Below are positions 22,874-64,000 of a DNA stretch of 64,000 nucleotides, one piece after another (the first letter of the stretch is position 1; every line of letters starts with the position of its first letter). The position numbers were made by a program, and so were the translations under genes. Source of the stretch: Octopus sinensis (Eukaryota); the NCBI RefSeq assembly GCF_006345805.1, contig NC_043015.1:12214001-12278000 (forward strand), in the 5' to 3' direction. The notes beneath the pieces were generated by a model. That model ran no database searches and was not told the origin of the DNA. It saw nothing but the letters and a program-made list of their open reading frames with translations.

Positions 22874-24165
22874 CGAGGGACGTTCAATAAGTAATGCCCC
22901 TGACCCACTTACAGTTGTTTGATCTAGTTGAAATTTTGCATGTGCAATTATTTATATCTCTATAGATTAAGTGGCAAATTACAGCTCTGAACTAATTGTG
23001 GTTTCTAATTTACAGGTGTTTGAACTGAGTCAAGTGTGAAATGGAGCCTGTTGAGTGTTGAGCAGTGATCCGGTTTTTGTATTTTAAAGGACGCACACCA
23101 CGGGAGACTTTCGATGAAATGAAAGTAACTTATGGTGATGATGCCCCATTATATGACCTTGTAAAACGCTGGCATCATGAATTCAAACATGGTCGGAACT
23201 CTGTGGAAACAGCTCCCAGATCTGGTCGCCCCCTTCTGTCATTGATGAGGCATCTGTCCGTCAAGTTGAGGCTGCTATTTTGGAAGATCGACGCATAGCT
23301 ATTCGCCAAATAGCCCATGAGGTCAAGATTAGTACCGGGTTTGTAGAAACTATCATTCATGACCATTCGCATATGCAAAACGTGTCTGCCAGATGGATTC
23401 CCAGGTTGCTCACGCCTTTCCAGAAGCAAGAACGCGTCGAGTGCTCGAGGATGAATTTGGAGATGTGCCAAGAAGATGAGTCAAAATTTTTCAAAAGACT
23501 GATTACACAGGGTAAAACCTGGGTCCATCACTACGATCCAGAGACCAAAGCCCAGTCAATGCAGTGGAAGCACCGTGACTCACCTCCTCCAAAGAAGGCA
23601 AGGGTGCAGCCCTCCGCTGGCAAGGTCATGCTCACAGTCTTCTGGGACCAGGACGGAGTAGTGATGACAGATTTCCTGGCAAAGGGTACTACAATTACAG
23701 GAGCCTATTATGCTTCCCTTTTGAGTAAATTAAGAGAAGCTATCAAAATCAAGAGGCGGGTCAAGATCAGCAAAGGCATCCTCCTCCTGCAGGACAACGC
23801 TCCTGTCCACAACTCGCTTGTCACCAGATCAGAAGCACAGCCGTGCGGCTATGAACTCCTACCCCATTTCGCCTACTCTCCTGACCTTGCACCCTCTGAT
23901 TTTCACCTCTTCCCAGCCATGAAGTTGTTTTTGAAAGGAAAGCGTTTCCCAGATGATGCAGCCTTGATTTCTGAAGTCACGTCATAGTTGGAGGAACAAG
24001 CTGGGGTCTTCTACAAAAACGGTCTCCAGAGCTGCATCAAACGATGGGAGAAATGCGTAACTCTGGGTGGTTCCTATGTAGAAAAAGACTAATAACTGTG
24101 CCAAGTTTCGTTGCTCTACTGCTATGGAAAGTGGGTCAGAGGCATTACTTATTGAACGACCCTCG
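22874..24165 (+). mobile_element. Full-length mariner transposon (irritans-like) with a transposase pseudogene at 23041-24092
   Basis: About 37-bp TIRs cgagggacgttcaataagtaatgcc..., TA TSD, 1292 bp; WIPRLL, QDNAP, YSPDLAPSD; first catalytic D appears changed (ITQGKTW); stops and a frameshift. Confidence 0.95.
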
Positions 24166-32919: not shown

Positions 32920-35510
32920 ATAAATCTGTGGATGGTGCAAAGTCCCCTCTTAACCCAAAGTAATGTCGTGGTGGAACAATGTAGTTGACAGGGTCATTAG
33001 GGAAAAGAAACAGGCATGGAGGTACTGGAAGAATGGCGGTAGCAGGGAATTGTATCAGACTGCCACAAGGGAAGCTAGGAGACAGGTTTATTTAGCCAGA
33101 GGAGAAGCATATAAGAAAAAATTTGCCAATGTCCTGCATTGTGAGGACCGAAAACTTGAGGTGTTTCGTGTTGCAAGACAGTGCATGAGAGAGAATTGTG
33201 ATGACATAGGAGAGAAATGTGTCTGCATGTATGACAGTTCACTTGTATTTAATGAGGCTGCAAGGAGTGAGACTTGGAGACGTCCATATGAAAGGTTTCT
33301 AAATGAAGAGAATGAATGGGAGAAAGAGAGTTTGCCAAATGTTGAACCAACAGAGGGACCAGCTATCTGAATTGAGAGTACCTTGGTAGATAAAGCAATT
33401 AAGGGTATGAAGACAGGGAAAGCCTCTGGCCCATCAGCAATCACCACAGAGATACTTAAGATATCTGACAGTGTCGGCTATAGTCTAGTCACCCATATAG
33501 TCAACTAGGTGATACATGGAATCATACCCAATGACCAGTGTAGACACCTGCTACAAAGGTAAAAGTGACACATTAGATACAAATAATTACAGAGGTATCA
33601 AGTTGTTGGATCAAGTAATGAAAGTCATAGCCCAACTAATTAGAGAGAGAGTTAGTTTAGATGAGATGCAGTTTGGGTTTGTGCCAGGGAAAACACCACT
33701 GATGCTATATTTCTGGTAAGACAGCTGCAGGAGAAATACCTAGCCAAAGATAAACCTCCGTACATGGCTTTCATTGGCATGGAGAAAGCCTTTGACAGGG
33801 TTCTCTGATCACTTATCTGGTGGTCAATGAGGAAACTAGGGATAGATGAATGGTTAGTGAGGGCTGTACAAGCCATGTACAGGGATGCTGTCAGTAAGGT
33901 GATGGTTGGCAACGAGTACAGTGACAAATACCAGGTAGGGGTAGAGGTCCACCAAGGATCAGTCCTCAGCCCATCTTATTCATCATAGTCCTCCAGGCAA
34001 TAACAGAGGAATTCAAGACAAGGGTGCCCCTGGGAGTTTCTCTATTATAATGACCTTGCTCTAATTGCTGAGTCCCTATCAGAACTAGAGGAGAAGTTTC
34101 AGGTGTGGAAGCAAGGATTAGAATCGAAGGGCCTTAGAGTCAACCTAGCAAAAACCAAAGTCTTAATAAGTAGGAAGGCAGACAAACCACAAATCCCTTC
34201 AGGTAGATGGCCCTGCTCAATCTGTAGCAAAGGCATAGGTAGAAACTCCATAAGATGTACCCAATGTAAGCTATGGACACATACAAGGTGCAGCAATATC
34301 AAAGGAAGGCTAACTGGGAAGATAGTTTTTGTGTGTGGCAAATGCTCAGGAGCAACAAACACTGAAAATGTGCAGAGAAAAGCTTCCATCACATTCCAGG
34401 GGGAAAAACAAGTAGTTGATAGCTTCTGTTACCTAGGTGACCAAGTCAGTAGCGGGGGTGGATGCTCTAAAAGTGTAGCTGCTAGAGTAAGGATAGCCTG
34501 GGCAAAGTTCAGAGAGCTCCTACCTTTGCTGACAAAGGGCTTCTCAATCAGAGTAAAAGATAGATTGTATGACGCATGTGTGTGAACAGCCACGCTACAT
34601 GGCAGTGAAACATGGGCCATGACTGCTGAGGACATGCGTAAACTTGCAAGGAATGAAGCCAGTATGCTCCACTGGATGTGTAATGTCAGTGTGCATACAC
34701 GACAGTGTAACTGCCCTGAGAGAAAAGTTGGACTTAAGAAGCATCAGATGTGGTGTGCAAGAGAGATGACTGCGATGGTATGGTCATATGTTGTAAATGG
34801 ATGAGGACAGCTGTGTGAAAAAGTGTCACACCTTAGCAGTTGAGGGAACCTGTGGAAGAGGTGGTGAAGCACTATCTTCGAACATTGGGCCTCACAAAGG
34901 CAATGGCAAGTGATAGAGAGCTTTGGAGATATGCTGTGCTTGAGAAAACCCAGCAAACCAAGTGAGATCATAACCATGGTCTATGCCAGTGCTGTATAAC
35001 CAGCCCATCTAAAAGTACCCTTCAATCATTGGGCAATAAACTATACTTGCGAAAACCTGTTGAGGCAAGTGAAATCATTGTCATGGCAGATGACAGTACC
35101 GCCTGATTGGCACCCATGCCAGTGGAACATTTAAAGCACCATTTGAGCATGATCGTTGCCAGGGCCGCTGACTGGCTCCCGTGCCAGTGGCACATAAAAA
35201 AGCACCATTCAAGCATGGTCGTTGCCAGTGCCAACAGACTGGCTCCTGTGCAGGTGGCACATAAAAAGCATCATTTGAGTGTGGCCAATGCCAGGACCAC
35301 CTGACTGGCCCTCATGCTGGTGGCACGTAAAAGCACCCACTACACTCTCGGAGTGGTTGGCCTTAGGAAGGGGATCCAGGTGTAGAAACTTTGCCAGATC
35401 AGATAAGAAACTGGTGCAGCCTTCTGGTTCGCCAGCCCTCAGTCAAACCGTCCAACCCATGCCAGCATGGAAAACAGAAGTTAAACGATGATGATGATGA
35501 TGATGATATA
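32920..35510 (+). mobile_element. RTE-clade LINE, 5'-truncated and degenerate, with a repeat-array 3' tail ending in (GAT)n
   Basis: RT motifs (NYRGIKLL, QFGFVPG, HQGSVLSP, GLRVNLAKTKV, zinc-finger-like WPCSICSKG, FCYLGD); tail with repeated TGGCACGTAAAAAGCACC units. Confidence 0.88.
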
Positions 35511-39779: not shown

Positions 39780-40014
39780 TTTTTCTTTTTATCTTCATTA
39801 TTTATTGATCATGTAGAAATAGTTGTCTGTGTGAAATCCAATACATCAGCAGGTGATTCTTGCATGCAGAAGTGTCCAAGGACATCCAGCCAGAGTCTCC
39901 AGCATATGACTGGTTTATACCCTGGCCTTCATTGACTCAGCATACAAAAAGCAAGTGTCAAGGCGCCAAGATGACACACGGTTTTATAAATATATATATA
40001 TAATATATAGGCAG
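39780..40014 (-). other. SELENOT: Selenoprotein T non-coding terminal exon (3' UTR); 3' end approximate
   Basis: Strong acceptor atttcttttctttttttattccag| at 40014; contains the SECIS and an AATAAA at 39801-39806. Confidence 0.8.
39860..39947 (-). promoter_or_regulatory. SECIS element, type II
   Basis: Minus strand reads A-UGAA GGCCAGGGU AU AAA CCAG UCAUAUG CUGG AG ACUCUGGCU GGAU: tandem G.A quartet, 9-bp helix II with 2 GU pairs, unpaired AAA, CCAG/CUGG mini-stem; lower helix UUGUAUGC/GCAUGCAA. Confidence 0.92.
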
Positions 40015-40639
40015 CTGGAATAAAAAAAAGAAAAGAAATATATTGATTTTGTTAAATAAACAAATGATCGACATGGCAGTTTCAACGTGAATTCAAAATG
40101 TGTGGACATGATGCAAGATATTAAACTCCAGGTCACCCCCTGATAAATGAGCAACCTTTTCTTCAAAGGAATTCATGCCATAAGCACTGCATCTATTTCT
40201 TTAAAAAATTTTTTTTTTTTTTGCAGACAGGTGTAGGCATGGCTGTGTGCTAAAAAGCTTGCTTCCCAAGCATATGGTTCTGGGTTCAGTCCCACTGCAT
40301 GGCACCTTCAGCAAGTGTCTTCTACTATAGCCTCAGGCCGACCAAAGCCTTATGAGCGGATTTGATAGTCAAAAAAATGAAAGCCAGTTGTGTGTGTGTG
40401 TGTGTTTGTCCTCCACTACCACTTGACAACTGGTGTTGGTGTGTTCCCATAACTTAGCACTTTGGTAAAATAGAATAAGTATTAGGCTTAAAATATAAAT
40501 TTCTGAGGTCGATTTGTTCAACTAAAACTTCTTCAAGTGAGTGTTCATATGTGGAAGATGCACAGGATCCATAAGAACTATAGAGACCCAGGAAATTGAG
40601 TTTCTCAATTGCCCTGGTGGTTCATTAGAGGTAGCAGAT

Positions 40640-41510
40640 AATTTCTGCTGCCAGAAGAGACCAAAGTAGTAATGGAGAAGGATGCATGGAGAGTGTGACA
40701 GCCATAATAAGAAAAGAATGGAGGAAATTCAGAGAGCTGTTACCTCTGTTGGCTACAAAAGGTTTCTCTCTCCAAGTGAAAGGAAGACTGTCTGATGCAA
40801 GTATACAGACAGCAATTCTAGATGGTAGTGACACATGGGCTCTGAACAAAGAGGAAATGTGAAGGTTAGAAAGGAATGGGGCTAGTAAGCTCTGCTGAAT
40901 GCATAATGAAAGTGTACATGTTCGACAGCGTGTTAGTGTATTGAGAGAGAAGTTGGGAATAAGAGGAATTAGTTGCTGTGTGCAAGGGAGAAGACTGCGC
41001 TGGTTTGGTCATGTCATGCAGATGGATGCTGACAGCTCAATAAAGTGCTGATCTCTCAAAGCAGATGGAACATGTAGAAGTGGGAGACCCAGGAAGACAT
41101 GGGACGAAGTACTGGAAGAACGACTTCAGTACACTGAACCTTTCAGATGAGATGAAAAAGGACCAAGATGCCTGGTGCTTTGCTGCATTCAAGAAGACCT
41201 GTACTCTGCGGCAGAAGTGTTAAGACCGGTCCCACTGGTGGTAAGAATTGACCTGCAAGAGTCCTGTGCCAATGCCATGTAAAAGCACCCGTGCAGTACC
41301 ACGTAAAAGCACCTGTGGAGTGTTGTGTAAAAGCACCCATGCAACACCGCATAAAAGCAAGCACTCAGTACACTCTGTAAAGTGGTTGGCGTTAGTAAGG
41401 GCATCCAGCTGTAGAAGCCAAACTGTGTCAAATCAGACTGAAGTCTGGTGCAGCTCCCCAGACCTGGTCAAACCATCCAACCCATGCCAGATGGACAATA
41501 GACATTAAAT
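40640..41510 (+). mobile_element. RTE LINE 3' fragment plus tail
   Basis: Homologous to 34450-35510 (KFRELLPLL, RLRWFGHV); ends in the same tail. Confidence 0.75.
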
Positions 41511-41517
41511 GATTATA

Positions 41518-41915
41518 TCTATATATATAAAAGTGATGATGTGTGGTGTCTGTCTCCTACGATTTAGATTCCTAACTACTCCCACATTTTGCAGTGCAGT
41601 TTAACCAAAAGCGGGTATCTTATAGTCGTGATTCATATCGAGCCCTTCTGGGTATTAGCGCGTGTCTACGATGAGTCTACGATTTAAAAAAAAATTTACC
41701 ATAACTTTTCCGCATTTTTAATGCATTTTCGCTCGGTTTATATAAGGGAAGTAACTCTCTAAAAATGTATTATTAAATCTCAGAACATAAAAAGCTACAG
41801 TAACACCCCCTTTGTGGTTAGCCATATTGAGATGGCTATTATACATTACATCTCTAAAAATGCTTATATAGTTATTTCCCTTATAAACCTGAGCAACGCC
41901 GGGCGATAATGCTAG
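41518..41915 (+). mobile_element. Non-autonomous Helitron (398 bp)
   Basis: A|TCTATATATATAAAAG ... subterminal hairpin cctgagcaacgccggg ... CTAG|T; no TSD. Confidence 0.85.
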
Positions 41916-41921
41916 TATATG

Positions 41922-41986
<65 letters not shown>

Positions 41987-43093
41987 ATCCAAGCTGGAGA
42001 AGCACATCCACCTGTAACAGCGCAGAATTCACCTCTGCAAGCTAATGTAGCAAGCTTACAGTGCTACCACTATTTACCGTCTGTAGATATGTTGTTTCTA
42101 CCTTGCAGTGCCTGTAAACCTTTGTATGGACTGGATCAGTTTGATTATAAACGCAACAGAATTTTGTTTTGAGATGACACAAACCAACTTTTAGCTTGAT
42201 TGTCTGCTAATTAATGAATATGACAATCTGTCCACATGTGCAAAAACACTCACTGGACATTTTCTCTCAAAGCATTGGACTTAATGACTAGCAGCATATA
42301 TTGTTCCCATACACAACTTGATGTTCTGATTTTTGTCCATACTCTCCAATAGTCACAAGTGTGCTTGTGTAGTTAAGTTTGCTTCCCAAACAAACGGTTA
42401 TGAGTTCAGTCCCACTGAGTGGCACCTTGGGCAAATGTCCTACTTTAGCTCCAGGCCAACCAAAGTCTTACAAGTGAATTTGCTAGAAGGAAACTGAAAA
42501 AAGCCTGTTATAAATATAAATATGTAAGTCTCCTCGTCTCAACATTGAGATCCCATGATAGTTGTGTCACTGTTATAAAAGCAGCATCACTCATTTCTAA
42601 TGTTCTGCAAAACATCTGGCCATAGGGAAATATTACCTCACTTGGAAACAAGTAAGGGTCAGCACAGAAAGAGCATCTGGCCATAGAAAAATCTAAGTCC
42701 ATTTAACCATACATGCACGCATGCAAAAGTGGATGTTAAAATGATGAAAGTGAACTTGGCTCAACCTAAGCCTTGTGTGTAAACATGGATAGATAGAAAC
42801 TGTGTAGAAGCCTGCTAGTATAGACTGTATTCATAATTCAAAGGTGTAGCCTTGTTACACATTATGCCTTGCTGAATCTACCTTTATACACATATATTCT
42901 TTTATTCTTTTGTTTGTCATTTGATTGCAGCCATGCTGGAGCACCACCTTTAGTCAAACAAACTGAACCCAGAACTTATTCTTTGTAAGCCTAGTACTTA
43001 TTTTATAGGTCTCTTTTGCCAAACCGCTAAGTTACGGTGATGTAAACACACCAACATCGGTTGTCAAGTGATGGTGGTGGGGAGGAACAAAAA

Positions 43094-43124
<31 letters not shown>

Positions 43125-43850
43125 ACAGGCTTCTTTCAGTTTCCGTCTACCAAATCCACTCACAAGGCTTTGGTTGGCCCGAAGCTATTGTAAAAGACAC
43201 TTAACCAAGATGCCATGTGGTAGACTAAACCCAGAACCATGTGGTTGAGAAGCAAGCTTCTTACCACATATATCAAAAGGGTACATATATCTATGGAATA
43301 CTCACTAACTCAATAAGCAGGTAATCAAGTTAATCAAACAACCGAAGACTTACCTAATCAGAAAGTCTAACCAAGATTCATACATGAATTACCTAAACAT
43401 CAATACTGCAACAATTGCTGAATAAATACTACACTATATTTGCTTACATGAAATAACAACATCCATTTATAGAGAATCATTAGAGCTCGTTGAAGATTTC
43501 AATTTTATTTCATGTTTTTTTTTTTTCGTTTTCAATTTTCCCTCTAATGATGAAATTTGAATTCATCATCATCATCCTTTAACGTCCATTGTCCATGCTG
43601 GCATGGGTCAGACAGTTTGATTGGGCAGACATGCTGGAAGGCTGCGCCAGAATCCAGTCTGATTTGGCATGGTTTTCTATGGCTGGATGCACTTCCTAAT
43701 GCCAACCACTCCGGGAGTGTAATGAGTGCTTTTACATGCCAGCAGTACAGGTGCCATTTGCGTGACACTGGTATCTGTCACAACTGCAATTTTGCTCAGC
43801 TTGATGGGTCTTCTTCTCAAGCACAACATAATGCCAAAGGTCTTGTCATT

Positions 43851-44085
43851 GCCTCCATAAGGTCCAACACTTGAAAGGAGCTCAGCCACTTTGCCTCCAT
43901 GAGGCCCAATGTTCAAAAGGAACTCCAACCACTTCACTACCGTGAGCCCAACACGTAAAAGAAACTCAGCCACTCTACCTCCATGAGGCTCAACACTCGA
44001 AAGGTACTCAGCCACTTTGCCTTCGTCAGGTCCAATGCTCGAAAGCCACTCGGCCGCTTTGCCTCAATGAGGCCCAACATTCAGA
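43851..44085. repeat. Degenerate minisatellite, about 42-bp unit, about 6 copies
   Basis: Unit like GCCTCCATGAGGCCCAACACTCGAAAGGAACTCAGCCACTTT. Confidence 0.75.
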
Positions 44086-44099
44086 AGTTGATTTCTTTT

Positions 44100-44500
44100 A
44101 CGTACCACCAATATAGGTGCACTTGGCTTGACAAGTCCTCCTAAGGAAAGCACATCGCCAAAGGTCTTGGTTACTAGTCATTGCTGCTGTGAGGTTCAAA
44201 GTTCATGCTTCACCACCTCATCCCATGTCTTCCTGGGTCTGCCTGCCTCTACCACAGGTTCCCTCCATAGTTAGAGATCAGCACTTCTTTACACAACTGT
44301 CCTCGTCCATTTGCATCACATGACCATACCAGTGCAGTCGTCTCTCTCTTACACACAACATCTGATTCCTCTTACGCCTAAACTTTCTCTCAAGATGCTT
44401 ACACTCAGTCGAACAAGCACACTGACACTGCACATCCAAAGAATGAATTCAGAGCTCCTAACAAAGGACAGATTAATATAATTAAGAGATTGACATAAGT
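44100..44500 (-). mobile_element. RTE LINE 3' fragment
   Basis: Reverse complement resembles 34650-34960 and 40900-41110. Confidence 0.6.
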
Positions 44501-44532
44501 CTAGAGAGTCGTTTCTTACCTTGAGATAGAAA

Positions 44533-44639
44533 TTAGGCCAGATCATCTTTATGAAGTCTCATATGATTATCTATAATCTGGAACATTTCGCTTGGAGATG
44601 GAATACGTCCATTTTCAAGTTTGGACCAAACTGGAACAT
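44533..44639 (-). CDS. SELENOT: Selenoprotein T, last coding exon (exon runs on to a donor after 44520)
   Basis: ctag|(D)VPVWSKLENGRIPSPSEMFQIIDNHMRLHKDDLA*. TAA at 44533-44535, then 13 nt of UTR (44532-44520) and AAG|gtaag. Confidence 0.95.
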
Positions 44640-48533: not shown

Positions 48534-48621
48534 CATTGAATGTTACTTCAAAAGCTCCGGTAGAAATCATATGACCTTCAAGAGCATTACTTAGAAAGAA
48601 GACCATCATACAAGAATAAAT
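48534..48621 (-). CDS. SELENOT: Selenoprotein T, internal exon (88 nt)
   Basis: ccag|IYSCMMVFFLSNALEGHMISTGAFEVTFN G|gtaag. Close to the conserved SelT segment YACMMVFFLSN...STGAFE; phases match both neighbouring exons. Confidence 0.96.
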
Positions 48622-49398
48622 CTGGAATTGATAAAAACACAAATCACAATGAATTGAACCATCACCAATAACAAAATACTTCAACAAAAAAATTTTGAAG
48701 ATTTTCACCCATTGATAATCTTTATTTAACGCAGAAGAAGAGAGGGTGAGGGAGAGTTAACCCTTTTGTTACCATATTTCTATTAAAATACACTGTCTTT
48801 ATTTCAATTAATTTGGAAACTAATTTAGAATTTAGTAAAATAATTTTGTGATTATTTAGCTGGTATTTGGAAGATAAATTAATATGAAATTTTGATAGGC
48901 TTAAATTCAGACCATTTTAAAACGAAGCTAATATCATAGGACCAAAATTGGTCTCAGGTACATGACCAGCCACCTCTAATGAGAGAGATGATTAAAGGAA
49001 CAGAATAAGACAGTACACCTGGGGGCCAGAGGCCAGAACATGGCGCTTTTGTCAGTGATTTTCTGTTTGTTCACACCTGGGACTAGATACCATAACCAAC
49101 ACAATGGGATAAGCAGCTTCTATATGGTTGCTAAATATACTAGAAATAGGAGTCAAATCTTCAATTCATGCTATTGTCTTCAAAAAGGAGCAATGAGTGA
49201 CAGTCCTGGATTTCTTGTATAGCAACTGCTGGAATGGCTTTAGTTCTAGATCCATTTGATCAGTGCTGGCCTGGGGGTTAAATACCAACACCACCACCAT
49301 AGAGAATATAACCAAAGAGGGAATGTCTACGCGATAGCTTGACTTGCAAGAAATAACAACCAAATTTCCTTTGAATCAGAACATATGATCTTAAACAC

Positions 49399-49640
49399 AG
49401 AAGTGCACAAGGAATTTTTAGTATTCCTTACATTGCTTGAAAATTCGTTGGAATGGTCATGCCTGGAATACTGATTACAGATCTATTTGTTCAGAACTAA
49501 TCCAGAGCAAAACAAAACAGAGAAGGGCACAAGGAATTTTTAGTATTCCTTACACTGCTTGAAAATTCGTTGGAATGGTCATGCCTGGAACACTGATTAC
49601 AGATCTATTTGTTCAGAACTAATCCAGAGCTAAACAAAAC
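49399..49640. repeat. Tandem duplication, about 122-bp period
   Basis: gcacaaggaatttttagtattcc... begins at both 49405 and 49527. Confidence 0.9.
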
Positions 49641-49693: not shown

Positions 49694-49931
49694 CTTATTT
49701 GAAGTGGCCCAAGTGAACATACTAGGAGTTTGCATATTGAGATAATGGAAAGGGTTAAACTCTGATAAAATGATACCTATTAAGGACAACTTGAATATAC
49801 TGAGAAACTGTGCTATAACTGCCTTGATAGTTGGAGGTGGAAAGTTCTCGCCTTCAACTTGGAGATTAGGAAATCTTTGATGAATTGCTTGTGCATATTG
49901 CTCAAACACTTTTCGGTAGCCTCAGGAATAA
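49694..49931 (-). CDS. SELENOT: Selenoprotein T, Sec-containing exon (238 nt; in-frame TGA at 49922-49924)
   Basis: Acceptor ...tctttcag, then T TAT TCC TGA GGC TAC CGA AAA GTG = (C)YSUGYRKVFEQYAQAIHQRFPNLQVEGENFPPP...FTWATSNK, then donor gtaagt. Matches the SelT CxxU redox motif and downstream sequence. The supplied ORF 49664-49909 is the same frame, cut short by the TGA. Confidence 0.96.
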
Positions 49932-50269
49932 CTGAAAGAAAGAAGAGAAATAGGGATTTATAAAATGTTAACCACATAGAATTTCATATCGCATAATAAC
50001 TAAATACAAGGTTATTACCACAGTCTGAGTATGTGGCACTGCAAGCTGAGTTTGGTGTATTTACACCATTTGTCTACACAAAGAAATTTTCTCCATGACA
50101 AAACACAGTGAATGGCTTTCTTACTGGTTTGAATATCCCCCAAGCATATTTAAACAGATAATAACTTTGTATTTATATACATCACTACTTAGTACTATCA
50201 CTTCACATAATGACTGCTCTATAACAATATAAGTACAAAATCCAGACAGCAAATGTAAACATACATAGA

Positions 50270-50326
<57 letters not shown>

Positions 50327-50328
50327 TG

Positions 50329-50369
<41 letters not shown>

Positions 50370-51145
50370 ACACACACACACACATACATATTAAAGCTCT
50401 CGACACTTAGTCTAAAGTGATCACTATCATATATTCCCAACTCAGGCAAGGGAGTATTTCGGTCTTGTGACTTGCAAGGCAATAACAATAATGCTGGCAC
50501 CATGAGAAAAAAGCACTCAGTACAGTCTTAAAGTGGTTGAAGTTAGGAAGAACATTGAGCTGCAGAATCTATATCGAAAGTAAAACACTGGAGCAAGACA
50601 TAGTCCTCTAAACCCATTGGAGCCTATCTAACCATCCAACCCATGCCAGCACAGAAAGCAGACATAAAAAAATGTTGCTGATAAATATGTTTCTTGCATG
50701 CAGTGCACAAATGAATAAATAAATATATATCTACATATATTTATAGGAGCAGGAATGGCTGGGTGCTAAGAAGCTTGCTTCCTAATCACATGGTTCAAGG
50801 TTCAATCTCAGGGCATGGCACCTCGAACTACTGTCTTCTACTGTAGCCTTGGGTTGACCAAAGCATTGTGAGTGGATTTGGTAGATGGAAACCAAAAGAT
50901 GATCATTGCGTATGTGCGTCCCCCCCCCGTCCCCACGACCACTTGACAACCAGTATTGGTGTAACTATGTTGTCCCCATAACTTAACAGTTTGGCTAAAG
51001 AGACCAACAGAATAAGTATCAGGCTTAATAATAAAAAAAAAAGTACTGGGATCAATTCATTCTCCTAAAAATTCTTCAAAGCAATACCCTAGCATGGCCA
51101 CAGTCTAATGACTTAAACAAGTAAAAGATAAAATGTGTATGTGTG

Positions 51146-51263
<118 letters not shown>

Positions 51264-51333
51264 TAGGGAATAAATCCAAATTTACAGGGAAAAAATCAGA
51301 TTTAGGATTAAATCCAATTTTATAGTAAAATAT

Positions 51334-51488
51334 TATATAATATTAATTAGAGACAAAACCACTATTTTGCAAAACAAACAAGGAAAGACTTAATCAATAC
51401 ATAAAATTTTAATAAAATTTTATTAAAATTTTATGTATTGATTAAGTCTTTCCTTGTTTGTTTTGCAAAATAGTGATTTTGTCTCTAA

Positions 51489-51501
<13 letters not shown>
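51334..51501. repeat. 168-bp spacerless palindrome
   Basis: 84-bp arms, one mismatch, centre aaaa|tttt at 51417/51418. Confidence 0.9.
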
Positions 51502-51534
<33 letters not shown>

Positions 51535-53419
51535 TTTGAGGTAGATTTTCTAGTTGGATGCCCTTCGTCATGCTAGCAAGTTTAGAATTCTCCATGGCCA
51601 GACAAGTTCTTGCAGAATATTGGAAATGAATGACATTGCTTATACGTGTGATAATCATTTACAACCTTCACGTAATGTCAAGACAAGGCATCACACACAC
51701 ACACAGAATGGGCTTCTTTCAATTTGTCTACTAAATCAGCTAACAAAGCTTTGTTCAGCTCAGGGCTATAACAGATGACATTAGCCCAAGGTACTATGCT
51801 CTGAACATGATTAGGAAGCCAAAAGTTTCTTTTAAAAATTTTTTGATTAATCTAAATGAAATTAAATAGAGATTCTATTAATTTTGTTATGAAGAATAAA
51901 ACTTGGCTCTATATGAGTTTTATTGTTCATAACATAATATTAATAAAATTTCAATTATTTAATTTCTTGTAACTTGATCTAAAAATTAAATTTATGTTTT
52001 TTTTTTTTTTATGTATTTATTTGATAAATAGTAAGTATGCAACAAAGAAAGAGTGATATAGTATAATTAATACCAATTTATTCACTGCTGAATGCACAGT
52101 AACCAATTTTGGATAGAAAGAAAACATTTTAACCCAGTATTTCTCAATCATTTTTTACTCTTTGAACCCCTTTGATACCTATTTTATTTGGGTGAACCCC
52201 AATAGCCAATCAATGTTTTAAAAAATCCTCTGTACTTTCATAATTAGATATTATTAGGAATTGTATAAAAAAAGAATTGTTAAAATATTTTGTGTATTGT
52301 AAGAGTAAAACCAATTTATTGCTAACAGATAATAACAAAATCTTATGTAGACCCCCAAAGATCATAGTTTGAACCCTTTCAATACCACATATCCATTGAA
52401 ATACACATTTCAATTACTTTTGAAAATAAGGAAGAATTTAGTAAAATAATTTTGTCATTAAGCAGGTGTCTGGAATATAATAAATTAGCATAAATTTTGA
52501 TGGAAGGTTTTAACTAAGATCATTTTAAAATGGGAAGTTTGTATCATAGAACCAGGGGTGATTTCAGACAGTTTGGTATCGAAAGAGTTAAAAGAAAAAT
52601 AAACGCAATTTCACAATGCTATAACCTACAAATCTAAATACGCCTTTTTTCTTTACTATGCATCCTAGGTGTGCTAAGTAAAAGGGTTGGCATCAGGAAG
52701 GGCAACTGGCCATAAAATAATTCTTCAAAATGTTTTGTGCAGCTTATGGCAGGTATGGAAATGTAGACAATGATGTAAAGAAATATGTAACAATTATTTT
52801 TAAGTCAAACGAATATATTCAACTGAACAAAAAAAAAATAATTTTTACATTGATACAAATTCAAAAAGTTAATGTAGATTCAATTTCTTAAATGGATTTT
52901 AAAATTTCCTAATTTTACAGTTTTTTAGCATTTATCTTTTGTTTCATTCAGTGAACTGCAGCTATGCTGGGCCCAGCCTTGAAGGATTTAGTCAAGCAAA
53001 TCAACCCCCAGGACTTATTTTTTAAAGCCTAGTACTTATTCCATCTGTCCTGGAACCACTCAGTTATGGGGTCATAAATCAACACCATTGTCAAATGAGG
53101 GACAAACACAGAGATATATCTATACAAACACCTACACACATACAGGCTTCTTTCAGTTTCCATTTACCAAATCCACACACAAGGCTTTGGTTGGCCTGGA
53201 GCTATAGTAGAAGATACTTGCCCAAGGTATCACACAGTGGGACTGAACCCAAAACCGTGTGGTTGGGAAACAAACTTCTTACCACACAGCAACACTTGTG
53301 CCTATGTGGACTTTTGTTTTGGAGCAACCACTGTATTTTAAACATATGCTAGCATAATTTGTTGCATAGAGAAACATAGATTCTGTTCAGAGTAAGTAAG
53401 AAACATCCATACATGATGG

Positions 53420-55570
53420 AGCTTTAGACCAAAATACCTTTACAATTGCTTTTTTTTCTATCATTATCAACAGAACAAATTGTGGATTCTTGATCTTCCT
53501 CATTAACAACACTTGATGGTAAACTGATTTGAAACATTTTGGGTAAATTCAAAATCTTTGTCACAATCTGATCATCAATGTTTTTATGCTTGGGACAATG
53601 TAATGGATTTTTAATAGATATTTTTCTGGTGCTCAAAAAGAAGTCAGCATTTTCATCTCACTCTCAAAAGAGGGTCAGGTTTAACCCTTTAGCATTTAAA
53701 CCGGCCATATCCGGCCAAAAGTATTCTGCCTGTTTTATGTTCAAACTGGCCAGATCTGGTCTCTCACACCAGCCCTACAATATCGTCTTAAAAATTAACA
53801 GCTACCTCATCAAAATCTCATAGCTACAAGATAATGCATGATTAGTTCAAAACAATGTGAATGAAAAAGGATTAATTTAGGCAGAATAATGCGAACACTA
53901 AAGGGTTAAAAGCTTATGCGGTAGCAGATGCAGCAAGTACACCATAAATTACAAACTGGCACCAAAAGTCAGAGATATGATGATGGTTTCAAATATTTAT
54001 TTCTATTGTGACATCCGAAATTTTGGTTTATTAGTTGTATGGGAGATACACTGTTGGATGATAGAAGGTACAAAAATATTTCTACATTTTAAAACTAACT
54101 TAGATCCATGGGGACAGGCTCTAAAGTTATCAAAGGTTTTTAATTTTTTTTATGTCAAACTGCAAATCCAATTTATCAAGTAAACCAATTTTAAAAAAGT
54201 TCCTTATCCAAACACACATTCTTTTGGGCTTAGTAAGAGATCAGTAAATGCATTATTCATTTCAAGGCTGTATGACAATGGAACTTAATCACTGCATGTT
54301 TTATCTTGTGTTGGGCAGATGCATTTGACAAGAACTGTCAGCCATTTATTTTGCTTGAATCCTCTGGCAGCTGCTTCAATACAAACTGCCAATGTTTTCA
54401 CTACTAAACATTTTTTAGTAAAGGCCAATTTCACTGGCATTGTATATTCAATCAGCTCTAAGATTATGTTCCTAAACAAGTTAATCAGATATTGGACTGA
54501 ATGCTTTTAGTCACTTGTAAATCAGTTGTTTTCACCAGTAATGTTCAGTTTCCACAGTTTGGTTAATGTAAACTATTCCTATCAGCTATTTTATAATTAG
54601 GCCAGAACATATAAAACCTAAAAAGCTTTAGCTTTTTGATAATGTTCTTAATTTTGTTTAAAGTTGTCATCACCGTTTAACATTCTCCTTTCATGCTGGC
54701 ATGGGTTGGATGGTTTGGAAGGAGCTGGAAAGTCACAAGACTGTGTCAAGCTCTACTGTCTGCTTGGCATGGTTTCTACAACTGGATGCCCTTCATAATG
54801 CCAACCACTTTACAGAGTGTACTTGGGGCTTTTTTTCATTGCATCAACAGCAGCAGTAAGACACCAAGTAGCTTGCAAGATAAGACCCCTCAACTAGGGG
54901 AGGAAGAATATTGAGGGAGGTGGGTTTTTGCTAGATGAATATTGCGTTTGCAATAAGAGGAGATACCTGGCTATCTCAGTTGAGGAGAGAGATGGTGAAG
55001 ATGTGATGGAGAGTATACTCAAGTTACAGGGAAGTGTATATGAGTGAGTTGGAAGCAAGGATTGGATAGGTTGAGCGAGTGGGTAAGTTTGTGAGATTGT
55101 GAAAGGAGGAGAGGGGGAATGTAATAAGTGGAGACAGGTAGAGAGAGGAGGCATTGGAAGGTATGTTGTGGAGGAAGAGATACGACAATGATTCAAAATC
55201 ATATCATATATCATTAACTCTTTCACATTTAAACTGGCCATATCTGGCCCAAATATTCTACCTGTTTTATGTTTAAAACTGGCCAGATCCAACTTCTCAC
55301 ACTTCCCCTACAAAGACTTTCTAAAAGTATATTATCACACTATTGAAATCTCAAGGCTACAAGACAATGCATGATTAACCCAAAGCAATGTAAATAAATA
55401 AGTATTGCTTTTAACTGAACAATCTGAATGCTAAAGCATTAACAAACTTACACATATGCCTCATAACCATTTTTCTTAATGTCTACTGTTGTAGTATAAA
55501 ATTTCTGTCTCTTTTGTTGTTTCTTCTTCAGTAACTTTAAACATCATGATGGAATATGTGACAAAGAATA
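53420..55570 (-). mobile_element. Heavily degraded Tigger/pogo transposase fossil with nested insertions; ends approximate
   Basis: Across frames: TTVDIKKN (HTH-psq-like, about 55480), KLNITGE (about 54540), IYNASEIGLY and KTLA...GFKQNK.LTVLV (54330-54450). Confidence 0.55.
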
Positions 55571-57385
55571 AAATGTTTAAAATACAGCACCAGGCATTTC
55601 ACGTTATATGCTTGGCATTCAGTTTACAACTGGTAGTTGCAGACATAAACAAGCTGGCACGATGATGGCAATATTCCTGACAATGATTTTCAAAAGTACC
55701 ATTAGCTTTGATTATCTGTTATTCTCTTTTACTCGTTTCAGTCATTTGACTGCGGTCATGCTGGAGCACTGCCTTTAGTGGAGCAAATCGACCCCAGGAC
55801 TTATTCTTTGTAAGCCCAGTACTTATTCCATCGGTCTCTTTTGTTGAACCGCTAAGTTACAGGGGACGTAAACACACCAGCATCGGTTGTCAAGCGATGT
55901 TGGGAGGACAAACACAGACACACAAACATATACACACACACAGTATATATATATATATATATACATGACGGGCTTCTTTCAGTTTCCGTCTACCAAATCT
56001 ACTCAAAAGGCTTTGCTCGGCCCGAATCTATAGTAGAAGACATTTGCCCGAGGTGCCATGCAGCAGGACTGAACCCGGAGCTATGTTGTTGGTAAGCAAG
56101 CTACTTACAACACAGCCACCCTGTGCCTATAATTCTAGATAATATTATTTCATAAGTTTAGTGATGGCATGTAACTTAATGGTTAGGATATTTGGCTTAC
56201 ACTCATAGGATCAGACATTCAATTCCCAGCAGCATGATACTTTATTTCACAAAGCTCCAGTCCACTCAACTGGCACAATTGAATAGCACCCATATTTCAA
56301 AGGGCCAGCCATGCCACATTCTGTGTCATGCTGAATCTCCCCGAGAACTAAATTATGGTCACGCGTGTCTGTGGAGTCCTTAGCCACTTGCAAGTTACTT
56401 TTGCCAGCAAGCAGTTCTATTGAGCAGATCAACTGGATCACTCATCACCATAACCAGTGGAGTGCCAGTCAGATTTCATAAGTTTATTGTAGTAATAATA
56501 TATACCATTTCCCTTCAAATCCAACCAACAAAGTTATCTATCTTCCTCCTTTATCCATGTTGTCTGTCTGTCTGTCTCACTCCTTCCAGGACTGACATCC
56601 TTCTGCTCCAGAACATCAACTCCCAAGAATTCCGTCCTCATCTATGTTTTTCTTACAAATTTCAATTTGCTGCTTTTCAATTGCATGAGCTCAAAATCCA
56701 GAAAGAATCTGTTCAGATCATGAACTTTGTCCCTCCTTCCTAAAACCATCTTGACGCCTCTGTCAGTCAGCACTGACCATGGACCTGCACCAGGAATATT
56801 TTTCACTCAAGTGTATACCTTGGTAAAGTTTCTTCATAGAAGACCAGCAGTTGATGCTACAGGTCTCTCTTCTCAATGCAACTTATGTCCAAGAGAAAAG
56901 CAAGGCCCAATTCAACTTGGCACCATTATCATCATAAGGGAAGTCAGAACACAAAGTGACAGAACAAATACTTCCAAACTCTAACAATTCCTCCAAACCA
57001 TCGCAACAGACTGGTAGTTTATTACATTGAGTTCAGAATGATAAAAAGGATATGGTCAACCTCAGCAAGAGTTTAACTCCCAAGGTTAAAAGCTCAAACA
57101 AATAAATATAGGGATTTTTGCCCCATGCCCTAATAACCCTGCACAAGCTATCGCCTAGCTAAAACTCTTAAAAACAATTATCATGCCTACAAGTATATGC
57201 TGATATTTGAAATGTCTACAGAAATGTGAAATTTTCCACTAAAAAAAAGAATAAAAACGTTCTGTAAAATAGAATCACTCTTCGAACCATGGAAGAAATT
57301 GGTAATATAACAAAAACAATCAGACAACCTGGAAGTCATGGAATTTCCCAGAATGTCGTTCAGATGTTATTTTCGGAATACTTTG

Positions 57386-57767
57386 GGATCTTTTCCTTTT
57401 GAACGGCACTTTTCAACACAATTTCTAGTTAACTAAACACTTTTAAACTTCGAATACTGGTAGAATGTGTCAAAATAAAACATTTTTCTCTCCTGGCTTT
57501 CTTGAGAAAATTGTAATTTGTAAGTTTAACGTAGTTTAATTTTTCGAATTTTAACCAATCAATGGCTTCTATTGAGCTAAAATCATTTGCTGCGTCTAAA
57601 ACTGAGACAAAAATTAAACTACGTTAAACTTACAAATTACAATTTTCTCAAGAAAGCCAAGAGAAAACAATGTTTTATTTTGACACATTCTACTAGTATA
57701 CGAAGTTTAAAAGTGTTTAGTCAACTAGGAATTGTGTTGAAAACTGCCGTTCAAAAGGAAAAGATCC
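57386..57767. mobile_element. MITE with about 159-bp TIRs and an 8-bp TSD (Merlin-like)
   Basis: Ends GGATCTTTTCCTTTTGAACGGCA / TGCCGTTCAAAAGGAAAAGATCC; flanks ATACTTTG / ATACTTCG. Confidence 0.8.
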
Positions 57768-59350
57768 ATACTTCGTCCAGTTCGCTCAGCTCTCGGTTGT
57801 CACTATGATCGTTTCTCTGGACGCTACGTTTGGCACCTCTTTAACTTGTTTGGCAAATTCCTCCTGAACACACTCATATAAAACCCACAATATTACAACC
57901 CTTTAATACTACCCAGTCGCTTTCTCACACGAGAGAACGAAGAGAGAACGTGTGAATGAAAGGCTGAGAGTGTACAGCCCAGCGTTTCCATTACACAAGT
58001 TCAACAAAACATGACATACTTTAAACCTGTTGTCTAAGACATCCGTCTCCGTCACCACCACCAGGATAACTAACTGCACAACTTGCAGAAGAAGAGAGAG
58101 AAGGAAAGAAACATTTGCAGAGGTGGTGGTCTGAAAATGTTACAGCGTTAATGTAGTAATTAGTTTTCGAGTACGTCAGAGCATTCACATACAAAAGACG
58201 ACACAGGGAGCGGAAGTTGTTGGACAGGATGATGTTCGTTTAGTTTCCCCCAATTACTGTAGTTTCCCGTCCTCCTCCAGACACCAATGAACTCTCTCAC
58301 ACACACACAAAACACCCATTCTCCAAACCTCACCAACCAACTGTCAGACACTGTCAGACTCGGCCCTTCCACAGACTGACATTGTCAAATCCTCAACAAT
58401 AAGTAGCGAATACACCTAACATACACATAAAATAAAATGCTTTTACAGAGAGATAGCCAGATGTGTAACGCGTGCACACAATAAGGTCGTTAGCTGTTTA
58501 GTTACATACACACACCGGGAAAGCAAGCAATATGACATACATACGGAAAAAGACGTAGCCAAGTGGCTAACAACAACGCATACAATTTGTGTATTTGTTT
58601 ATATATCGAGCCGTTTGCCCTCATGAGAACCCAATTTCTGTTTGGGCTTGACTCCTTTCTATATATTGTTAAAGGGGAAGAAGAGGGGTCAATTATACAC
58701 ATTTGATTACTTCCGTAAGATAAACAGACAGGGTACAGCCTCGGGTATATCAAGTCGGAAGAGATAAAGAATACGCACACCACCCGTTTCCGGCGTAACC
58801 CTGATCCTAAACACCGGGTGTGCGTATTCTTTACCTTCGCCATCAAGTCTTACTAAATCAGTGATCGCTATTCTTCCCGAACAGTACTGGCTGCGTTGAT
58901 AAAAGCCCATAATTAAAATAAGTTAACAAAACTACCATACAGAGGGTCGATTAAGTACCAGTAATATGCTGAAACCATCTCAATCTACTATTTCCTAGTT
59001 CCATAAATCGGTGGGCCTAAATACCTCTATCAAATATGTATCAGTTGTAACTAGAAAGTTTCAGCGTAATCAATAGGGATGCTAAAAATAGCTGCCAAAT
59101 ATACCCCAAATCACGTCTTTACAATCTCAGAAAAGAGGCCACAATAAATAAAGTGGTCCTGGGTTCTCTTGCACGACGGCATGATTCTGGTTAGAATGTC
59201 TTTGATCGTAGATATGTTCAATCAAGACTGAGCCGAGGTTAAACAACAATACCACTAACGTACTAGACTAGACTCAATTTAATCTTAAACTGTTTACCAA
59301 ACTTCAATAGGTTATAATACAGTTCTATATTTAAGAGATGAGGGATTATT

Positions 59351-59592
59351 TACATTATTTACATTTGACGGGTATTTGTCCTCATCTTGTTTATTGTTAA
59401 CACAACGTTTCGGCCGACGTTAGACTTCAATGGAGACATATTGAGAAACTCCATCAAAAACTAGCTCGTCTTTCGACTCAGGTTCAAAATTTCCCCAAGA
59501 CACCTGATGAAAGCTGAAGGGTATATCAGCCGAAACGTTGTGTTAACAACAAACAAGATGAGGACAAATATCCGCCAAATGTAAATAATGTA
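59351..59592. repeat. Inverted repeat (64-bp arms) of Penelope pseudo-LTR type
   Basis: 59351-59414 vs 59529-59592 with about 3 mismatches; the right arm overlaps the hammerhead motif. Confidence 0.85.
59499..59544 (+). ncRNA. Minimal hammerhead-like motif of the Penelope-associated type
   Basis: GACAC-CUGAUGA-AA-GCUGA(AGGGUAUA)UCAGC-C-GAAA-CGUU-GUGUU; AACGUU palindrome in place of stem III. Confidence 0.65.
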
Positions 59593-60295
59593 CTCAATAG
59601 GTTATGTTAGAAAACGCAGTCAACTTTGCTTTGTTTAGTCTTCCGAAGTTGATGAAATAAAGTACGAGCCAAGTGTTGAGGTTGATATCATTAACTGCTC
59701 CCTTTCTCAAAATCTGGTCGATGTACCCAAATAAGACAATATTTTAACATTTGAGGGTGGTGGAACGGCAGAACTGGTGCAGCATGAGGCAAAATCACGA
59801 GCCTTTTATGTTTTAAGTCCAAATTCCACTGAAGTCAGTAAAAGTACTAACTTTTTCACCTTGTGGTTATGCAAGATGGAAATCTAGAATTCACTTCTGA
59901 CTTTAATCAACCCTAATGAAGCAGATCTATAATCAATAAGTGTTGTTGGAGATTTGGTTGCTATTTCTAACAGGTCGGCGAGCACGTAGACTCACCCGTT
60001 GACTTTGCGAACAAAGTCAACAGGAAAGCTGTGACACAGCATGTAAATATGTCAATTAACAACAGTATGATTAACCTTAGTGTTTTTTGTGATAATGTAT
60101 TAAAATAAGGTTTTTTAAAAAAAGTAGCTCGAAATCAATTATCCATATCATCAAAAACCCCACGAACTAGGAACAAATTATCATTGAAGCCGTTTTTAAA
60201 CGGTGTGTGGAGAGGCTACACCAATCCTTATACATTAAAACGCGTGTTAATGTGACGAGAGGTGGAGTGAGTGTTTGTGCTATATATATAGAATA

Positions 60296-61116
60296 CTAGC
60301 AGTATCGCCCGGCGTTGCTCGGGTTTGTAAGGGGAAATAACTATATAAGCATTTTTAGAGAGTTATAGCCAAAAAATAGCAAAAAATGCATTAAATATGG
60401 GAAAAAAATAATGGTAATTTTTTTTTTTATCGTTTATCTTACTCATCGTAGACAATTTTAGAGAGTTACTTCCCTTATATAATAGCGAAAAATGCATTAA
60501 AATGGGAAAAAATGATGGTAAATTTTTTTTTAAATCGTAGACTCATCGTAGACGCGCGCTAATACCCAGAAGGGCTCGATATGAATCACGACTATAAGAT
60601 ACCCGCTTTGGTTTAAACTGCACCGCAAAATGTGGGAGTAAGGAATCTAAATCGTAGGAGACAGACATACAACCTCTCTTTTATATATAAAGATATCACA
60701 TACATACAAGCGTATCTACAAATATATGGTGTGGATGAGTTTAGGTAGGTAGATAGATAATAAATTAAGTGACAATTTTCAAATTCAGTATATTGTTGTG
60801 TACTTTTCAAATGCATTAAATATGGGAAAAAAATAATGGTAATTTTTTTTTAAATCGTTTACTCATCGTAGACATTTTTAGAGAGTTACTTCCTTATATA
60901 ATAGCGAAAAAATGCATGTTTAAAATGGAAAAAATGATGGTAAATTTTTTTTTAAATCGTAGACTTCATCGTAGACGCGCGCTAATACCCAGAAGGGCTC
61001 GATATGAATCACGACTATAAGATACCCGCTTTTGGTTAAACTGCACCGCAAAATGTGGGAGTAAGGAATCTAAATCGTAGGAGACAGACATACAACCTCT
61101 CTTTTATATATAAAGA
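60296..61116 (-). mobile_element. Helitron of the 41.5-kb family: complete copy 60296-60693 plus a tandem 5' partial copy ending at 61116
   Basis: 3' CTAG with hairpin cccgagcaacgccggg at 60296; TC 5' ends at 60693 and 61116; internal homology to 41518-41915. Confidence 0.85.
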
Positions 61117-61970
61117 TATCACATACATACAAGCGTATCTACAAATATATGGGTGGATGAGTTTAGGTAGGTAGGTAGGTAGGTAGGTAGATAGATATAA
61201 ATTAAGTGACAATTTTCAAATTCAGTATATTGTTGTACTTTTTCATGCGGAATCAGAGTTTGTAATTCAGTTATCGCAGAAAAAAAAAGAAAAAATTTCA
61301 GGAAAATGTAACAAAGGTTTAGAATTTCCTCATTTTTACCCAATCAGAGAAAAGGGTTTGTGCGTAACAGCCGTGATAAAATGAAACTAAACAAGTTTTA
61401 AAACAAACTGAAAGCAATGCATGAGAAATAATATAGTAACTAATAGAGAGAGAGAGAGACCGATGGTGATAGTGGGAGAGTTGTCGATCTGAAAGTTTGA
61501 GTTATTTCCAGGGCTGGACGCGAAATTTTTTTCCCACGAGAGCTCCGGACCCCAGTTATGAACTCATTTGCATACAGCCAATCAGAGCTCAAACTAATTT
61601 ATGAGCACATAAGTGATGGGCGATAAGGTCACTTGAGTAAGGAGTGACCATGCTTCTTTTCACTTTTAATAACGCTTGTTCTTGTTCCAACCATGGCTGC
61701 CTCTGCGTAGTTATTTGTGTTGTTGTTTACTTTGTAAAACAGTAAGGGGAAAGGGTTGCTAGTACATCACCCTCTACCCACATTTTTCCCATCCACATCT
61801 TTACCATATGGGGCCCTAACAAAATTCGATAATAGCTATAGATGCAAATCTAATTATCTTCTAAAATCAAGCATTGCTTACAACACCGTTCTTCGTCTTG
61901 AGCTTACTTGGTAGAGTGTGTTTGTTAACTTGACAACAAAATCAAAGTGAGCTCTGATTGGCTGTATGCA

Positions 61971-62499
61971 AGCGCAAATTTTTTTTCCACGAGAGTTCCG
62001 GACCCCAGTAATGAACTCATTTGCATACAAGCCAATCAGAGCAGAGCAGAGCCATCTTTATACTTTCTTGTCAGCACCTTGCATTCCTTACTCTTTCCCT
62101 TTCTACTGGCAGACGACAACCTTTTTGTCAATATCGAAATTTTTTTTCGCTAACCCCATGAGTACTACTGTCTCTCTAACTACCTGTCGGGCAAAAAATA
62201 AATATATGTAAATAATATTTCTTCCTTTTTGGTATTGATCCTTCGATGTTCACTAGTTACTCCGACGTTGCCACAATAATACACTTGCCCAAACTGAATT
62301 GTTGGAGTAATTTCATTTTTTCTAGAAAATGTTTTTAAAAAGTTATAAAAGTTTAAAGTTTGATCATTTCCACCCAGACAAGAAACAGGATTTGGAAGCC
62401 GTCATTTTGTGCGTGAGCATTTTTCAATCAAGCTCCTTAAGGTCATCAAATTAATTTACATTTTTATATTTTCCGTGAATTTTTCACGGGTCCAGCTAG
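61971..62499 (+). mobile_element. Helitron-like element, second family, 5'-truncated
   Basis: Hairpin ccgtgaa/ttcacgg followed by gtccagCTAG|T; homologous to 62851-63264 in inverted orientation. Confidence 0.7.
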
Positions 62500-62850
62500 T
62501 TATATAAATAGATCTATAATTTACTATTAATAATATAATAGTACTCAGCAAATTTTTTTAGTACACACACATTTTCGTTTTTTTTTTGTTGATCTTTTTG
62601 TTTGGTTACCAGCGTCAATTTTCTGTTCGAATTGATTTCATATTCCGTGTAATGATACACTTTTATAGGCCAATTAATAAAGTGAAAGTAGTTTTGGCTA
62701 TAAATCAATAAATAGTTATTAGTAATTAAAGTTTGAAAATTTTGGAAATTTTACTCAATCGTAAGCCACAGACACATCATGCTTTTCTATTTTAAATTAA
62801 CAAACATTTCACGTCTTGTTTACAAATATTGACAACATGTGCTATTTTGT

Positions 62851-63582
62851 CACACACAAAATGACAGCTTCCAAATCCTGCTTCTTGACTGAGTGAAAAT
62901 GATCAAACTTTAACCTCTATAACTTTTTAAAAACATTTTTCTGGAAAAAATTAAATAACTCCAGCAATTCAGTTTGGGCAAGTGTATTAATGTGCCAATG
63001 TCGGAATAAGCAGTGAACATAGAAGGATCAACACCAAGAAGGAAGAAATATTTACATATATTTATTCGTTACAGTAGTACTTATAGAGATAGCGAAAAAA
63101 ATTTTCGATAGTGACTAAAAGGTTGCTGTCTGCAAGTGGAGAGGGAAAGAGTAAGGGATGCACGGTGCTGACTAGAAAGGATAAAGGTGGCTCTGTTCTG
63201 ATTGGTTGTATGTAAATGAGTTCATTACTGGGGTCCGGAACTCTCGTGGAAAAACATTTTGCGCCTCGGGCAAGCTGAACTTCGGCGTGTACAAGCTGAC
63301 GGTCGTGGAAGTTTCCTTGTCTTTGTCACGCCCTCCTTGTGCCCATATCACCTTGATGGCCTTGGCCTCGGGGACTACCCGAGGGGCCGGTACCTGAAGC
63401 TGGCCTGGTTATTCTTAAAAAGCACAAGTATATATATTTTATCTTACAATTTATGGAGCCAGCTTCTCTTGTGAGCTCGAACCGGGGGGCATGTTCTCGA
63501 AAATCAAATTCGTTTTTCTCGAGACCGCACTGTCTCAGAGCTTTTCAGGGCTAATCTCATACACTCGCATTTATATAATAGA
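62851..63582 (-). mobile_element. Helitron-like element, second family, 5' portion
   Basis: A|TCTATTATATAAA 5' end at 63582; inverted homology to 61972-62415. Confidence 0.65.
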
Positions 63583-64000
63583 TATATTCAAATATATATG
63601 TATGTATACACACAAATAAACTGAGACCCCCACACCATTACATATTCACACACACACAAAGGAAAATATTCTCTATAAATGCAATATCAAAACACAACTC
63701 AGCCAACAGAGTGTACATCAGAATCACCATCAAGAAATTTAAGACCACATTTAACTAGCACCATATATATTCTGGAATCCTAACGAGAGAAATGTCACAT
63801 TGTCCTTACACATTTGGCATCAAGTGATAACCACACACTACACGAGCTTCAGTGAATAATGTTACCAAAACCACTATAAGACCACAGTCGCTGCCAGTCC
63901 TGTAATTTATGTACAAATGAATGTTTTCACATCCTATTAGCCCTCAAACAACAAAAAACAAAAACTCATAATTACCTACAGACTTTCAAAATCTATTTCA

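Follow-up and report, generated by a model that had tools for sequence, protein, structure and literature searches.

Organization of the locus

The window analysed here, a 64,000-nucleotide stretch of the Octopus sinensis genome (contig NC_043015.1, positions 12,214,001 to 12,278,000), carries on its minus strand an ordinary orthologue of selenoprotein T (SELENOT, SelT). SELENOT is an ER-membrane, thioredoxin-like oxidoreductase of the Rdx family with a redox centre of the form C-x-x-U. The part of the gene that lies in the window would comprise a 238-nt exon with an in-frame TGA, referred to as the Sec exon in the following, an 88-nt exon, the last coding exon and a final 3'-UTR exon that harbours a form-2 SECIS (Table 1).

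Table 1. Features of the SelT gene in the window. Sequences are given in gene sense; a slash marks an exon boundary.
Feature	Position	Strand	Remarks
Redox motif	49916-49931	-	T TAT TCC TGA GGC TAC, i.e. third base of the presumed Cys codon, then Y-S-U-G-Y; direct read
UGA, Sec codon (very probable)	49922-49924	-	in frame; flanked by conserved coding sequence
Sec exon, 238 nt	49694-49931	-	(C)YSUGYRKVFEQY...TWATSNK; enters in phase 2, exits in phase 0
Next coding exon, 88 nt	48534-48621	-	IYSCMMVFFLSNALEGHMISTGAFEVTFN plus G of an Asp codon; ttccag/ATT ... AAT G/gtaagc
Last coding exon	44520-44639	-	tttctag/AT GTT ... DVPVWSKLENGRIPSPSEMFQIIDNHMRLHKDDLA; stop TAA 44535-44533; 13 nt of 3'-UTR; donor CAAG/gtaaga
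Predicted 3'-UTR intron, 4.5 kb	40015-44519	-	GT 44519-44518, AG 40016-40015; both splice sites fit the consensus
SECIS, form 2	39876-39940	-	Rfam SECIS_1, 25.3 bits; about 10 kb downstream of the TGA
Putative polyadenylation signal	39801-39806	-	AATAAA, direct read; about 70 nt past the SECIS

Direct reading of the sequence places a strong acceptor (tttctcttctttctttcag, AG at 49933-49932, with a long pyrimidine tract ahead of it) immediately before the Sec exon and a donor (AAG/gtaagt, GT at 49693-49692) at its end. In the frame starting at 49930 the exon reads Y-S, a stop and then GYRKVFEQYAQAIHQRFPNLQVEGENFPPPTIKAVIAQFLSIFKLSLIGIILSEFNPFHYLNMQTPSMFTWATSNK, i.e. 79 codons are open to the donor and the TGA is the sole stop. 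The motif coordinates and the exon length that a preliminary description of this DNA had given proved to be exact. For comparison we used orthologous sequences from five intronless transcripts (contigs L001/L002, L004, L005, L006 and L007) and from one genomic contig of a very close relative (L003). In a tblastn search the Sec exon aligns with L001 without gaps and with 72% identity (E=5.8e-37), a similarity to an orthologous SelT mRNA that is far beyond chance, and the TGA of the window falls exactly onto the in-frame TGA of this transcript (TGT TAT TCT TGA GGT TAC). The exon also aligns without gaps to residues 46-125 of human SELENOT, including the hydrophobic insertion, which corresponds to 1+79x3 = 238 coding bases; the human query served only as a lead.

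Two further coding exons were located by tblastn, using the human SELENOT query and subsequently the real orthologous protein. The junctions around the exon at 48621-48534 reproduce the uninterrupted reading of the L001 mRNA, and the last coding exon, with its coding part at 44639-44533, is 87% identical to the L001 C-terminus (tblastn). Splicing of the three exons yields a product of 144 residues, and the 144 codons contain neither another stop nor a frameshift.

The 5' end of the gene presumably lies beyond the window. Orthologous transcripts have a hydrophobic leader, e.g. MATLNVITTVALCLCFCALT, at their start, and the N-terminal segment ...KLTKFAGPTIKFMFC is highly conserved in molluscan SelT. 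On the minus strand from 49932 to 64000, however, an exon with the conserved ending ...KFAGPTIKFMF-C was detected neither by tblastn with seven N-termini (one human and six molluscan) nor by scanning every TGG[TC] donor, for which the peptide upstream of each such site was scored on both strands. The best candidate (62305-62270, PTIQFGQVYYCG) was rejected as it has no donor or frame support. As no match was obtained up to 64000, exon 1 would be situated beyond the window, at a distance of over 14 kb on the upstream side, and would supply the signal peptide as well as the bases TG of the split Cys codon. All five orthologous mRNAs have TGT or TGC at this position (TGT/TGC-xxx-TCx-TGA-GGx-TAC), suggesting that the residue is Cys in the octopus protein, too. 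The preliminary description had claimed that splicing restores this Cys via a phase-2 intron: the third base T directly after the acceptor and the phase-2 entry of the exon agree with this, whereas the TG half-codon itself is absent from the window and the identity of the residue follows from the orthologues.

Family membership

The 144-residue product contains the Pfam domain Rdx (PF10262; residues 1-134, E=4.4e-18, 65.7 bits versus a cutoff of 22.6). A database search returned 342 homologues, all of them with PF10262, and every family-named entry among the best 120 of these 342 is annotated as selenoprotein T or SelT-like, the species ranging from molluscs to mammals. Identity to the window protein is highest for two unnamed, transcript-derived and cephalopod-like entries (P0003, 83%; P0002, 82%) and amounts to 64% for Lottia and to 55% for chimpanzee and Bos SELENOT over 98-99% of the query. 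Searches of a collection of 5.8 billion proteins gave no exact match to the SelT protein of the window.

Other Rdx proteins, i.e. SelW, SelH, SelV and MIEN1/C17orf37, have the Pfam Rdx fold in common with the octopus protein, but they do not contain the SelT-specific hydrophobic insertion and their similarity to it is much lower. None of them occurs among the named matches in the best 120 of the 342 homologues. The nearest solved structure is that of MIEN1 (2LJK), a distant Rdx relative that matches residues 95-132 with E=2.8e-5. Neither a second SelT copy nor a SelT pseudogene was detected in the window by tblastn.

SECIS element and 3'-UTR

In relaxed-threshold scans the sole SECIS_1 match in the window is located at 39940-39876 on the strand of the gene. 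Its E-value is 0.73 for a search of 34 kb against 4227 families and 0.0065 for the 301-nt 3' region alone, and at the gathering threshold Rfam gives no matches at all (25.3 bits for the SECIS versus 35 for RF00031). The same model assigns 23-26 bits to the 3'-UTR elements of L005-L007 and misses those of L001 and L004 at E<=1 despite the AUGA...AAA...GA motif present in both. As bona fide orthologous elements thus also score low, the SECIS_1 model is insensitive for this lineage and the element of the window is not aberrant.

The predicted fold exhibits the core of a SECIS, with AUGA at 39932-39929, AAA at 39916-39914 in an AUAAA loop and GA at 39886-39885. The core is framed by a 9-bp helix II (GGCCAGGGU and ACUCUGGCU), an apical mini-helix (CCAG/CUGG) and a flanking helix I, and the predicted minimum free energy is -23.5 kcal/mol (z = -1.98). 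About 80% of the bases match the elements of L001 and L004. Across three cephalopod sequences 97.4% of the helix cells are paired, a value that drops to 23-54% if the partners are slid, and four pairs with a one-sided change remain paired; double compensatory changes do not occur in these three close sequences. Pair counts were restricted to the cephalopod sequences because the MAFFT alignment with the distant SECIS of L005-L007 is 2 nt out of register. In L005 and L007 the architecture of the element is kept, the helix sequences being different, and all five orthologous transcripts contain an AUGA...AAA...GA hairpin 58-90 nt past the stop codon. Thus, on the basis of sequence and motif, we regard the SECIS of the window as the orthologue of the 3'-UTR SECIS of its relatives (L001/L004).

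In the genome 4.6 kb separate the SECIS from the stop codon. The distance can probably be attributed to a 3'-UTR intron that separates the SECIS from the stop codon, on which the preliminary description was silent. The acceptor at 40016-40015 consists of a pyrimidine tract and AG, followed by CTGCCTATAT, and the junction that splicing would create, CAAG/CTGCCTATAT (AAG/CTG..CTATAT), matches the sequence of L001 (GAAGCTGGTGCTATAT, AAGCTGGTGCTATAT). Removal of this intron would put the AUGA about 95 nt past the stop codon, as compared to 58-90 nt in the relatives. The last exon would then probably extend from 40014 to about 39785.

A conserved stem-loop directly after the UGA, i.e. a selenocysteine redefinition element, was not detected in the six orthologues with RNAalifold (-0.72 kcal/mol, 5 weak pairs), and thus no local recoding enhancer was found. 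ARAGORN predicts no tRNA genes in the 64-kb window.

Probable decoding of the in-frame TGA as Sec

Based on these findings we consider it very probable that the TGA is the Sec codon of an octopod SELENOT orthologue and that it is read by SECIS-dependent recoding of UGA. In the canonical pathway the SECIS, with its kink-turn AUGA/GA quartet and AAA loop motif, would be bound by SECIS-binding protein 2 (SBP2), which would recruit eEFSec together with Sec-tRNA[Ser]Sec to the ribosome as it pauses at the UGA, so that Sec would be inserted instead of termination taking place. The product would have about 200 residues and a Cys-Tyr-Ser-Sec selenenylsulfide redox pair. The preliminary description had likewise called the gene a true SelT selenoprotein with a recoded UGA, and this call is borne out by the Rdx domain, the conservation of the TGA, the constraint on the codons that follow it and the SECIS on the same strand.

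The sequence past the TGA evolves as coding sequence. Over the 137 codons downstream of it, comparison with L001 and L004 gives pN = 0.09 and pS = 0.73-0.75, the synonymous sites being almost saturated, and pN/pS is about 0.12 versus L001. In L003, 6 of the 238 bases of the Sec exon differ, five of these changes being synonymous and one non-synonymous, and the acceptor, the donor and the TGA are unchanged. Purifying selection past the TGA is hence strong, so translation continues beyond it. This conservation of the downstream coding sequence also weighs against the idea that the UGA mostly terminates translation and that the main product is a short N-terminal peptide, the SECIS being too distant, or non-functional, if the 3'-UTR intron is retained. 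Termination always competes with Sec insertion, the genomic distance between SECIS and stop codon is considerable and the element scores below the Rfam threshold; yet eukaryotic SECIS act at kilobase distances anyway, related mRNAs have their SECIS close to the stop codon, and the predicted splice restores this spacing. We therefore regard predominant termination as very improbable.

The TGA is kept in all six independent orthologous sequences (L001/L002, L003, L004, L005, L006 and L007). In the five transcripts it lies in frame within a reading frame of 196-199 codons, in the context TGT/TGC-(TAT/TTC)-TC(T/C)-TGA-GG(T/C/G)-TA(C/T). Its presence in these transcripts and in the independent assembly of the close relative (L003) argues against an error of sequencing or assembly and against a rare allele in place of a real TGC or TGT codon, i.e. 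a Cys-type SelT as in insects. Such forms do exist (CxxC is found in 29 of the best 120 of the 342 homologues, the named ones being mainly insects), but a conserved SECIS would be purposeless in a Cys form, and we consider an error or allele hardly credible.

Besides these Cys entries, the Sec column of the best 120 of the 342 homologues contains 22 entries with W, which represent TGA translated as Trp, about 50 entries that start just after the codon and about 17 that dodge it. Trp readings and starts just after the codon are what a Sec codon usually leaves behind in automatic annotation. Six public mammalian and fish entries named 'Selenoprotein T' (P0085, P0094, P0106, P0110, P0113 and P0121), among them chimpanzee 'SELENOT isoform 1', have wrong residues in the CxxU motif (e.g. 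WVSSGY, CVSKGY), which are artefacts of the annotation at the Sec codon.

A decaying gene or pseudogene in which the TGA is a genuine premature stop is just as hard to credit: the searches of the window did not reveal exon 1 and mammals have several SelT pseudogenes (PMC3316567), but the introns with consensus splice sites show that this is not a processed pseudogene, the 144 codons are otherwise free of stops and frameshifts, selection past the TGA is strong in the comparisons with both L003 and L001, and the window contains no second SelT copy.

Comparison with known SelT genes

Vertebrate SELENOT/SelT1 (human, mouse) and the octopus protein have the Rdx/thioredoxin-like fold and, given the presumed Cys of the octopus protein, a C-x-S-U-G-Y redox centre in common, but the motif is CVSU in mammals and would be CYSU in octopus, and the C-terminal tails differ as well. 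The thioredoxin-like fold of mouse SelT is encoded by exons 2 and 3, and Sec belongs to exon 2 (PMC4840926). In octopus Sec would likewise lie in the second exon, whereas the thioredoxin-fold region is contained in one 238-nt exon as opposed to exons 2-3 in mouse, which would imply that one intron was gained or lost. The preliminary description had equated the 238 nt with human exons 2 and 3 (111+127 nt); the mouse exon layout and the gap-free alignment to human residues 46-125 would be indirectly compatible with this.

The 3' ends can be compared in the same way. In mammalian SelT the 3'-UTR is distributed over two exons, the SECIS lying wholly in the last one (Mariotti et al. 2012, PMC3316567), which is the layout deduced above for the octopus gene. 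It is conceivable, although we rate it as rather doubtful, that the intron in the Cys codon and the 3'-UTR stub and intron, with the SECIS in a terminal exon of its own, are orthologous between octopus and mammals and as old as the bilaterian ancestor, one intron of the thioredoxin fold having been gained or lost since. If so, retention of a stop-proximal 3'-UTR intron would suggest selection on the arrangement of the SECIS exon, e.g. by a coupling of Sec decoding to nonsense-mediated decay.

Molluscan and other lophotrochozoan transcripts (L001/L002 and L004-L007 as well as partial ones from Lottia, Lymnaea and Lingula) encode CYSU or CFSU with TGA. In these transcripts the segment ...KFAGPT(I/L)(K/R)FMFC precedes the Sec motif and the SECIS is located within 100 nt of the stop codon; they stem from different species, and their proteins are 64-83% identical to the window protein. 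The corresponding public protein entries break off at the Sec codon or have Trp there. The insect 'thioredoxin reductase-like selenoprotein T homolog CG3887' belongs to the same family and has the same architecture with 52-59% identity, but contains CYSC, i.e. Cys in place of Sec, so these proteins need neither UGA recoding nor a SECIS. According to the preliminary description the homologue from Drosophila contains Cys; at the level of insects this holds, as CG3887-homolog entries from hemipterans and other insects read CYSCGY.

Sec decoding by SECIS, SBP2 and eEFSec is textbook biology, and the locus adds nothing new on its mechanism or on the function of SelT. Its main value lies in annotation, as SelT models from automatic gene callers come out truncated or distorted at the Sec codon. 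With a correct gene model, which places Sec at 49924-49922 and includes three coding exons in the window, a spliced 3'-UTR and the SECIS, the octopod gene could be annotated properly and counted in cephalopod selenoproteomes.

Repeats and neighbouring sequences

The introns of the gene contain several repeats. In the intron that, in gene sense, directly follows the Sec exon a 122-nt unit occurs twice in tandem (49393-49514 and 49515-49636, 96% identical), and the related contig L003 also has part of this unit beside the exon. The intron upstream of the Sec exon contains a near-perfect palindrome (51334-51501) that consists of two 84-nt arms with 99% complementarity and no spacer and that is flanked by (TA)n. 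SINE-like repeat copies, which by eye we take to be octopus SINEs, are found at 40260-40480 (minus strand) and 50740-51110 (plus strand), the former inside the predicted 3'-UTR intron and the latter in the intron that precedes the Sec exon.

Microsatellites at 50267-50395 and 51126-51260 are made up of long (GA)n, (GT)n/(CA)n and (TA)n tracts. All other relaxed-threshold Rfam matches were discarded as artefacts of low-complexity microsatellites or of the palindrome: the microsatellites explain the sub-threshold matches to mir-297, mir-466 and mir-1277, and the palindrome gives rise to spurious matches to plant and animal miRNA families (MIR774, mir-1284).

Elsewhere in the window, a remnant of a mariner/Tc1-type transposase lies at 23280-23987 on the plus strand (Pfam Transposase_1, 6.6e-25), and the minus-strand segment 11242-11643 looks by eye like the HTH part at the N-terminus of a mariner transposase and has no Pfam match. 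Retroelement fragments with a reverse transcriptase and a PHD finger are present at 32963-34585 (plus strand) and 6137-6745 (minus strand). The retroelement ORF at 34103-34585 shares 67-88% identity with many proteins of Octopus bimaculoides; these are its sole named matches, and they identify the window as octopod. Finally, an ORF of 143 amino acids on the minus strand (18280-18711) begins with ATG, ends with ...NIVLWSLVMGIPYISIYDIKGGF and has no Pfam match. It resembles the start of the NUS1/Nogo-B-receptor family (cis-prenyltransferase subunit) and may represent a neighbouring gene's first exon.
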